Assembly: GCF_000400465.1 (NCBI RefSeq)
Contig: NW_008806274.1
Location: 240,244 to 272,243 of the forward strand
Source: Wallemia ichthyophaga EXF-994
Taxonomy: Eukaryota; Fungi; Basidiomycota
Direction: 5' to 3'
Length of the DNA stretch: 32,000 bases
Shown here: piece by piece, positions 10,211 through 16,648 of the stretch
How the letters are laid out: every line of letters starts with the position of its first letter
Numbering within the stretch: the stretch's first letter is position 1
Notes under the pieces: model-generated
The model's database searches: none
Told to the model about the DNA's origin: nothing
Seen by the model: the letters and a program-made list of their open reading frames with translations, nothing else
Program-made: the position numbers and the translations under genes

Positions 10211-10755
10211 GAGGATTTACTTTTACTTTTAAGTAGAATGTCAAAATGAATTTTCTTTCTGGGGATTACATCCAGTGTGTGTTTGTTACAAATGTGGAAA
10301 TGGGCTATGTCGGATCAGGAAGCACTGCGAGCGCGTCGGATAGACGTTTGAAAGTGACGACATACAGAATTACAGCGTGACATAATAATATCGTAATATC
10401 CTTAATAACGTAATATCTTAATATCTCCCAGTCTACCCGAGTTCAGCCTCGTGATCTCAAGAACACGAATGTCGTGAAAAAGAAATATCGAGCAATCGGA
10501 AAGGCCCGGGGAGAGTGGCTTAGTGGCTGTGAGAGTGTGTGGAAATATTCTGAGTAGATGCACAGTGTTTTCGCCCTGGTGAGGTACATATCGATGACAT
10601 TGATCGATGGAATTGGAGTGGCTGGGAGTAGGAAATTGTGCAAATACACTGCAATGCATAGATGAAAACAGGGAATGCATTTATGAAAAGTTTTAAAATA
10701 AAGAGACAATTGGATATGCTGGCATAGAGAGAAGATGTCTAGCGTTGAAATTGAC

Positions 10756-15867: not shown

Positions 15868-16220
15868 GTTGGACGTTTGTGTTGATGAGCCAAGTGAGCG
15901 GGTTCAGAAGCGTTAAGTGGATAGTTGAGCTATCAAATACTTGAAACCTACAGTTTAGTTTTACTTGTACCAAGTCGTCCTCGTTATCCCGCACGACGTG
16001 ACATGAACTCAAAGAGTTTTGTATAGCTTTTATTAACCTAATTGCATCCCGAGAATTCACAGATGACTGATTCTGCATACTTAAAAGCAGCCGCGACAGA
16101 GCAAGCAACAGCTCGTGGCTGGTAATTAAAGAGGGATGAAGATTTGCGCGTTTTTTAAAACGATGAAAGAAAAACCGCTGATATATACCAAGCTTCATAA
16201 CGTAAGTATCAACAATCGAA

Positions 16221-16231
16221 TAGTACAGCGG
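16221..16231 (+). promoter_or_regulatory. Pol III A-box-like element in the leader of the permuted tRNA
   Basis: TAGTACAGCGG fits TRGYNNARNNG. It starts 43 nt before G53 of the B box (16264), versus 45 nt from U8 to G53 in the mature tRNA. Confidence 0.6.
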
Positions 16232-16248
16232 GTGCAACTTGCTAGTTC

Positions 16249-16327
16249 ATGATGAGGTCCCAGGTTCGATCCCTGGTATCTGCAGATCTAGCAGATATAG
16301 CTCAGTGGTAGTAGCGCATCACTAGTA
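16249..16327 (+). tRNA. Circularly permuted tRNA gene, predicted tRNA-Thr(AGT): 3' half 16249-16284, 6-nt spacer 16285-16290, 5' half 16291-16327
   Basis: Acceptor GCAGATA/TATCTGC (7/7 WC), anticodon stem CATCA/TGATG (5/5), T arm CCAGG-TTCGATC-CCTGG (5/5), D arm GCT...AGC with GG, variable loop AGGTC and discriminator A. Joining the 5' half to the 3' half gives a 73-nt cloverleaf with loop CT-AGT-AA. Confidence 0.88.
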
Positions 16328-16332
16328 TTAAA

Positions 16333-16337
16333 TTTTT
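16333..16337 (+). terminator. Pol III oligo-T terminator
   Basis: TTTTT begins 5 nt after the end of the tRNA 5' half. Confidence 0.65.
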
Positions 16338-16648
16338 GTCTCTAATTGGAAGATATCATAGGACTCATTTTTACCTCTGTCAATGAATGTTCATTCTTTA
16401 CGCATTTCGGAATGTACGTGTGGGCATTGACTTAGAACGGTGGTCTATGAAGGATTTAGAACAAGTGACGCTTATAAAAGTATTAATGCTCAGGCTAGCT
16501 GTGAATGTGTGAGAATATATGCATTAATACAGCAGTATAAATAGTGTCTGTGTGTGTTGATACTGGTATATCTTTAGAGAGAGAAGAGAGTTCGAAAAAG
16601 AAGAAACAAGTGTTCAGTACTTGAGAGATCGCTGTGGTTGCCTACCAT

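Follow-up and report, generated by a model that had tools for sequence, protein, structure and literature searches.

How can a tRNA gene be transcribed when its two halves stand in reverse order? This question is raised by a locus in Wallemia ichthyophaga EXF-994, a halophilic basidiomycete, where the 3′ half of a tRNA gene with its B box precedes the 5′ half with its A box. A 2014 review regards this inverted B-then-A order as unsuitable for TFIIIC, and holds that permutation at position 37/38 is plausible in any eukaryote and that most eukaryotes have none (PMC3978253). For the permuted genes of Cyanidioschyzon merolae, in which TFC1 and TFC3 were not found, an upstream TATA-like element and TFIIIC-independent transcription have been proposed (PMC3978253). 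The stretch of DNA analyzed here, referred to as the window, comprises 32,000 nucleotides (matching record GCA_000400465.1, KE007224.1). Its first-pass annotation had suggested another arrangement, in which a second A-box match in the leader restores the A-then-B order and forms an internal type-2 promoter with the B box of the tRNA.

A circularly permuted tRNA-Thr(AGU) gene in Wallemia

The genes around the element encode hexokinase, Sec61, DOHH, Nup54, acetyl-CoA synthetase, and an Rsc7-like protein. The permuted gene (16249–16327) is flanked by Nup54 and a DUF7137 gene, runs antisense to the two of them, and is organized as leader, 3′ half, 6-nt spacer, 5′ half, 5-nt trailer, and T5 (Table 1). 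Joining 16291–16327 to 16249–16284 yields a canonical tRNA-Thr(AGU) that ARAGORN accepts; the gene is a circularly permuted tRNA gene of type II with its junction at 37/38, the halves of which reassemble into a canonical cloverleaf. The upstream half holds the 3′ strand of the anticodon stem, the variable loop, the T arm with the B box, the 3′ strand of the acceptor stem, and the discriminator A. The B box conforms to the consensus GGTTCGANTCC, reading GGTTCGATCCC at 16263–16273 and GGTTCGATTCC and GGTTCGAGTCC in other lineages, and the tRNA's own A box, in the D arm, follows it 34 nt downstream. In the native gene order, neither ARAGORN nor Rfam at gathering thresholds calls a tRNA in the window, and standard tRNA finders therefore miss permuted genes. 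A scan of the window and the related loci for permuted tRNAs returned no permuted gene other than tRNA-Thr(AGU). With relaxed E-values, Rfam places YrlA first over 16231–16345 (21.7 bits against a gathering score of 69, E = 0.018), followed by tRNA at 18.9 bits, all below threshold and neither of them informative about the motif; the tRNA-like module of YrlA, a bacterial Y-RNA-like RNA, runs in the order T arm, closed stem, D arm, a likeness of layout and not homology.

Table 1 Features of the permuted tRNA-Thr(AGU) locus of W. ichthyophaga, in window positions.
Feature	Position	Strand	Basis or remark
T6 run upstream of gene	16151–16156	+	Sequence read
TATATA, possible TFIIIB/TBP site	16182–16187	+	39 nt before leader motif
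AACAATCGAA, 10 nt directly 5′ of motif	16211–16220	+	8/10 positions match L090
Leader A-box-like motif TAGTACAGCGGGT, equivalent to positions 8–20	16221–16233	+	Conserved in other lineages
Rest of leader GCAACTTGCTAGTTC	16234–16248	+	Sequence read; one SNP at 16241 in L004
3′ half of tRNA-Thr(AGU), positions 38–73	16249–16284	+	ARAGORN (de-permuted), covariation; no variation in six W. ichthyophaga strains
B box GGTTCGATCC	16263–16272	+	G53 is 16264
Spacer GATCTA, position 73 to position 1	16285–16290	+	Sequence read; one SNP, strain L001
5′ half of tRNA-Thr(AGU), positions 1–37	16291–16327	+	ARAGORN, covariation; no variation in six strains
Own A box of tRNA TAGCTCAGTGG	16298–16308	+	Inside 5′ half
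Anticodon AGT	16324–16326	+	Inside 5′ half
Trailer TTAAA and T5 Pol III terminator (16333–16337)	16328–16337	+	Sequence read; trailer base 1 is T or A by strain

Orthologous intergenic regions were fetched through the neighboring proteins, and four Wallemia lineages were compared. W. ichthyophaga is represented by six strains (L001–L006) and W. mellicola by L007, L079, and L091–L099, with motif polymorphism scored in nine strains. Of the other two, L081 is a Wallemia-like lineage from ENA metagenome assemblies whose DOHH is 70% identical to that of the window, and L090 is a W. hederae-like Logan assembly with a DOHH 88% identical, the contig of which ends inside the T arm. All four carry the permuted gene at the same place. 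The W. hederae reference contig (L080) stops 750 bp upstream of Nup54 and has no tRNA on the stretch present, and L100, which is 94–97% identical to L081, departs from it ahead of the tRNA position and is without a tRNA. When metagenomic DNA was scanned for a B box with the D-arm sequence of this tRNA-Thr behind it, 69 matches were obtained, none of them permuted; all are ordinary tandem tRNA genes, apparently bacterial or phage, and the scan added no lineage to the four. Because the four lineages belong to one genus-level clade, independent replication is limited. Identity at four-fold sites of DOHH between W. ichthyophaga and the other lineages is 0.33–0.43, close to saturation.

The contigs differ in places around the locus. 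L081 (11209–11392), L082 (11393 onward), and L100 (7566 onward) are 94–99.9% identical until 450–630 bp upstream of the leader motif. Past this point they continue in three ways, and the tRNA and the DUF7137 gene are kept only in L081; the divergence could be structural variation or could come from assembly chimeras. Several independent assemblies also stop within the permuted gene: L090 does so in the T stem (end 9494), and L097–L099 of W. mellicola in the 5′ half. This hints at repeats of parts of the tRNA at other sites in these genomes, such as additional tRNA-Thr copies.

ARAGORN calls a tRNA-Thr(agt) from the de-permuted halves in each of three lineages, and 98.8% of the stem cells in the de-permuted alignment are paired. 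Four pairs that join the two halves (4:69, 5:68, 29:41, and 30:40) have changed on both sides, which argues that the gene is real, and the observed covariation score was reached by none of 500 shuffles. Within each species both halves are constant, with the exception of one variable-loop site in W. mellicola, while the spacer differs by lineage, being CAC or CACA in W. mellicola and GTGCAAA in L081. By these patterns the permuted gene is under tRNA-type selection and appears functional. The earlier argument for function rather than debris is thus borne out by the covariation between the halves, the stem pairing, and the invariance of both halves.

The leader match in the window is not beyond chance

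The leader match TAGTACAGCGG spans 16221–16231, and the conserved form TAGTACAGCGGGT extends it to 16233. Its position, those of the B box, the tRNA's own A box, and the TATATA, and the distance of 43 nt from T16221 to G53 all agree exactly with the first-pass annotation. Against the strict consensus TRGCNNAGTGG it has two mismatches, a score reached with P = 0.12 in dinucleotide-shuffled 70-nt leaders; against TRGCNNAGYGG it has one (P = 0.02, shuffled leader). Across the whole window, 22 A-box matches with at most one mismatch are observed where 18.7 are expected. In the W. ichthyophaga sequence alone, the leader match is not beyond chance, and since a match in a single sequence is unremarkable, an outside test is needed. 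About one perfect A-box match is expected by chance in a window of this size; the one found, TGGCTTAGTGG at 10516–10526, is part of a coding ORF on the minus strand, has no B box close to it, and was treated as chance. As judged from the orthologous leaders described below, the motif gains its significance only through recurrence in the other lineages.

Conservation of the leader motif

The leaders read aaTAGTACAGCGGGTgc in W. ichthyophaga, aaTAGTACAGCGGGTac in L090, ggTAGCCCAGCGGGTta in W. mellicola, and aaTGGGTTAGTGGGTtc in L081. Within them the motif is TAGTACAGCGGGT in W. ichthyophaga and L090, TAGCCCAGCGGGT in W. mellicola, and TGGGTTAGTGGGT in L081, so that the 11-mer, whose conservation had been predicted wherever the permuted gene is conserved, is present in all four Wallemia lineages examined. 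MAFFT aligns the motif block unprompted, and almost no other leader sequence aligns. When the three full leaders are searched without reference to the motif, it ranks first among shared 13-mers, with eight invariant columns, at a modest significance of P ~0.03–0.04 by shuffles. In a BLAST comparison of the ~400 nt of intergenic sequence in W. ichthyophaga and L090, the sole conserved non-coding block is window 16211–16262, which takes in the motif with the preceding 10 nt and the beginning of the tRNA. Conservation does not extend to the remainder of the leader (16234–16248), and the other lineages rely on different leader–trailer helices.

The substitutions within the motif follow the A-box consensus. 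Positions T8, G10, A14, G15, G18, and G19 are constant in all lineages, position 9 is R (A or G), position 16 is Y (C or T), as it likewise is in the genuine A boxes of the same tRNAs, and positions 12–13 vary freely. The strict consensus is missed at two positions in W. ichthyophaga and in L090 and at one each in W. mellicola and L081; when Y11, R15, and Y16 are allowed, the single off-consensus base in the four lineages is G11 of L081. The out-of-sample probability of the strict TRGCNNAGTGG in a 70-nt leader is 0.012 for W. mellicola and 0.006 for L081, and the product of P over three lineages is ~1e-5 for the strict consensus and ~1e-7 with Y16 allowed. Among the six W. ichthyophaga strains the motif has 0/13 variable sites as compared to 11/60 in the 60 nt upstream, and it is invariant in the nine W. 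mellicola strains. Given that four-fold sites are near saturation, an unconstrained 13-mer would have been randomized. These patterns indicate that the motif is under purifying selection with an A-box-like pattern of constraint.

Could the motif nevertheless be a chance match, or a neutral leftover of an ancestral duplicated 5′ half that has no function today? In a single species it is not significant, as noted above, and the tandem-duplication model predicts a decaying 5′ half exactly at the leader (PMC3978253), of which CTAGT in W. ichthyophaga and CATCA in L090 could be remnants. Against this stand the presence of the A-box part in all four lineages despite the near-saturation of four-fold sites, the joint chance of ~1e-5 together with zero polymorphism in 15 strains, and the rest of the presumed relic, which is not significantly similar to the 5′ half (P = 0.13–0.98). 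We consider this explanation very improbable.

A probable DNA element within the predicted transcript

A conserved leader element may act in DNA or in RNA. One alternative is that the motif acts in RNA, as a leader hairpin or a D-arm mimic that guides co-transcriptional folding of the 3′ half or handling by the splicing endonuclease, RNase P, or La. In W. mellicola at least, the motif is predicted to lie within the transcript (see below), some local hairpin is possible in each lineage, and the constant GG could in principle mimic G18–G19. Yet a conserved RNA pairing partner of the motif, sought in the four lineages, was not found. The local hairpins are GUAC/GUGC in W. ichthyophaga, GUAC/GUAC in L090, GGUAGCCC/GGGUUAUC in W. 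mellicola, and AGUGG/CCACU in L081; their register and partner differ between lineages, and there is therefore no conserved pairing or covariation. Conservation tracks the A-box consensus position by position and not a stem pattern, and a genuine D arm is already present in the same transcript. The A-box-like substitutions and the lack of a conserved partner favor constraint at the DNA level, and an RNA role is unlikely.

The geometry of the two boxes agrees with a type-2 promoter. The first T of the motif stands 43 nt from G53 in W. ichthyophaga, 38 in L090, 53 in W. mellicola, and 57 in L081, so that in all four lineages an A-then-B order is found on the same strand at 38–57 nt, inside the ~30–60 bp usual for such a promoter. 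This spacing is within the range that yeast TFIIIC tolerates.

The transcribed extent is indicated by T runs and by the predicted fold of the precursor. A T run terminates Pol III, and the T6 run upstream of the gene would stop Pol III transcripts coming from further upstream, thereby bounding the possible start site. Between 25 nt upstream of the motif and the last base of the 5′ half, T runs do not exceed three in any lineage, and five or more consecutive Ts follow within 6–11 nt after the 5′ half in all of them. The minimum-free-energy fold of the predicted W. mellicola precursor is a cloverleaf (−53 kcal/mol) in which the 9 nt directly 5′ of the motif (AGAUCAUCC) pair with the trailer (GGAUGAUCU), and a population SNP (C to U) turns a G–C pair of this leader–trailer helix into G–U and keeps the helix. 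Such pairing would place the W. mellicola motif inside the transcript and the start at least 12 nt upstream of the motif, as expected if a tRNA-type A box sets it, implying, on the modeled fold, that the motif is a transcribed and later discarded internal element. In the window, these observations are consistent with a start ~12–20 nt before the motif, near 16200–16212 as first proposed; the 10 nt directly 5′ of the motif fall in this predicted start-site region. The W. mellicola trailer (L007 ~7125–7105, minus strand; L091–L096) also contains a polymorphic 7-nt tandem duplication, CTTTTTG, which gives two consecutive T5 terminators in some strains and one in others.

Each lineage can form helices near the splice sites, which may take part in a bulge–helix–bulge-like structure, canonically of the 3-4-3 type, and which differ between lineages: the 9-bp leader–trailer helix with CAUGCU/AGUAUG in W. 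mellicola, CUUCG/CGAAG in L081, and pairing of GCUAGU (16241–16246) with the anticodon loop ACUAGU in W. ichthyophaga. All four lineages have a G at leader position −3 or −4 that might pair with C32, G16245 being the candidate in W. ichthyophaga. The leader CUAG (16242–16245), a palindrome, recurs as C32–U33–A34–G35 (16322–16325), and pairing between the two may have eased the permutation of tRNA-Thr(AGU).

TATA-like elements upstream of the leader motif

As a further alternative, upstream TATA-like or AT-rich elements together with the B box might drive transcription, the motif being kept for another DNA-level reason such as binding of another factor or nucleosome positioning. TATA-like elements lie 30–39 nt before the motif in three lineages (TATATA at −39 in W. 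ichthyophaga, TATATAA at −38 in L090, TATAG at −30 in L081), and transcription from an upstream promoter, of the kind suggested for C. merolae, might be sufficient. The one ordinary tRNA gene available from the L081/L082 lineage has TATTAAAA 30 nt before its T8, and TATA-dependent tRNA transcription has been reported in some fungi and plants (PMC3978253). These elements are conserved only in part: strain L005 of W. ichthyophaga has TGTATA instead of TATATA, and W. mellicola has no TATA-like sequence at the corresponding upstream position. Moreover, the upstream 60 nt that contain the element are the most polymorphic stretch measured, and the A-box likeness of the conserved block is left unexplained. 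We regard this alternative as decidedly unlikely; an upstream element may contribute to transcription, though it is not the conserved feature.

Two observations concern the flanks themselves. The ordinary gene mentioned above is a tRNA-Asp(GTC) (L082 11774–11845) whose offset is almost that of the permuted tRNA in L081, and the distance from its TATTAAAA to T8 equals that from TATAG to the motif in L081. Upstream of the permuted gene, a 20-codon ORF on the + strand, MTDSAYLKAAATEQATARGW (16063–16125), overlaps a segment (16063–16118) that is constant in the six strains and is followed by 100 polymorphic nt; 16063–16125 may belong to the promoter or 5′ region of Nup54 on the other strand.

A model for expression and origin of the permuted gene

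Comparative evidence thus supports the proposed type-2 internal promoter in the leader: the motif is the sole conserved island in otherwise unalignable leaders, its substitutions are A-box-like, and it stands at promoter-like spacing from G53. We put the probability that TAGTACAGCGGGT (16221–16233) is a working TFIIIC A box, paired with the tRNA's own B box, at about 0.6. In this model, the leader motif 43 bp upstream of the T-arm B box would restore the A-then-B order for TFIIIC, which would place TFIIIB upstream, over TATATA in W. ichthyophaga. TFIIIC binding and the start site are here inferred. Pol III, starting ~10–20 nt before the motif, would read the leader, 3′ half, spacer, 5′ half, and trailer and stop at T5. 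The precursor would fold as a cloverleaf with the spacer closing the acceptor stem; the tRNA splicing endonuclease would cut before A38 (16249) and after A37 (16327), and a ligase would circularize the excised RNA. At the acceptor stem this circle would then be opened by RNase P and tRNase Z, removing the spacer, and CCA would be added, while the leader, including the A box, would be discarded. The processing steps with their circular intermediate are drawn by analogy from C. merolae (PMC3978253).

Where the leader A box came from may be read from the tandem-duplication model, in which the 5′ half of a copy lying upstream gave rise to the leader (PMC3978253). The W. mellicola motif is identical to the genuine A box at 10 of 11 positions, the CTAGT of the W. 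ichthyophaga leader matches the anticodon loop, and the CATCA of the L090 leader matches positions 27–31. The leader after the motif shows no significant similarity to its own 5′ half in any lineage, leaving a relic origin plausible and suggestive only. It is in this sense that the motif may survive from the D-arm region of an otherwise decayed upstream tandem tRNA copy; if the leader is a relic, only its A-box part is preserved.

Relation to known Pol III genes and permuted tRNAs

In the literature searched, with reviews up to 2026, the only hosts recorded for permuted tRNA genes are red and green algae, chlorarachniophyte nucleomorphs, and one archaeon, and there is no fungal report; fungi are therefore a new host group. 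The comparison set comprised C. merolae, prasinophytes, chlorarachniophyte nucleomorphs, and Thermofilum pendens (Soma 2007; Maruyama 2010; Chan 2011; PMC3978253). Shared with Wallemia are a 3′ half upstream on one strand, a short spacer from 73 to 1, the type II junction at 37/38, a T run after the 5′ half, and the possibility of leader–trailer pairing beside the splice sites. The known genes differ in their spacers, of 7–74 nt as compared to 3–7 nt in Wallemia, and in their hosts, that of the Wallemia gene being a fungus. In contrast to C. merolae, the Wallemia leader has a conserved A-box-like element in the right order and at the right spacing with the B box, and the difference from an upstream-TATA reliance that the first-pass annotation anticipated agrees with the literature (PMC3978253).

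Other Pol III genes share single aspects of this arrangement. The consensus of both boxes, their order, the 38–57 bp spacing, and the terminator are those of an ordinary type-2 tRNA promoter, from which Wallemia differs in that its proposed A box is not the one encoding the D arm of the product. In the RPR1 gene of S. cerevisiae, the tRNA-like leader promoter of which was originally described by Lee, Evans, and Engelke in 1991, a Pol III promoter element is transcribed and then lost with the leader, as proposed for Wallemia. [quoted passage not shown] In RPR1, both the A and the B box lie in the leader, whereas in Wallemia the proposed A box alone would be discarded, the B box being part of the mature tRNA, a product that needs splicing-type processing. 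As such, the Wallemia gene resembles RPR1 in one respect and is not an RPR1-type leader promoter. S. cerevisiae SNR6 (U6), with an internal A box and a B box beyond the terminator, shows that TFIIIC accepts unusual box placement (PMC5095917); there the displaced element is the B box, a strong TATA box takes part, and the order is still A then B.

The proposed type-2 promoter, whose A box would be discarded and whose B box is retained in the product, would be a new arrangement. We give even odds to the wider proposition that this is the first permuted tRNA gene known outside algae and archaea and owes its persistence in a TFIIIC-dependent eukaryote to the A box of an upstream copy since lost, retained in the leader as an element that can be discarded and forming a hybrid promoter. 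The leader A box is a testable answer to how a permuted gene is expressed where TFIIIC is used, and it suggests a route without a non-functional intermediate, in which the outer halves disappear after a tandem duplication and the upstream A box is kept. If the hybrid-promoter reading is true, tandem duplication could yield permutation without ever interrupting Pol III transcription, and Wallemia would offer a culturable fungal system for the circular-intermediate tRNA pathway.
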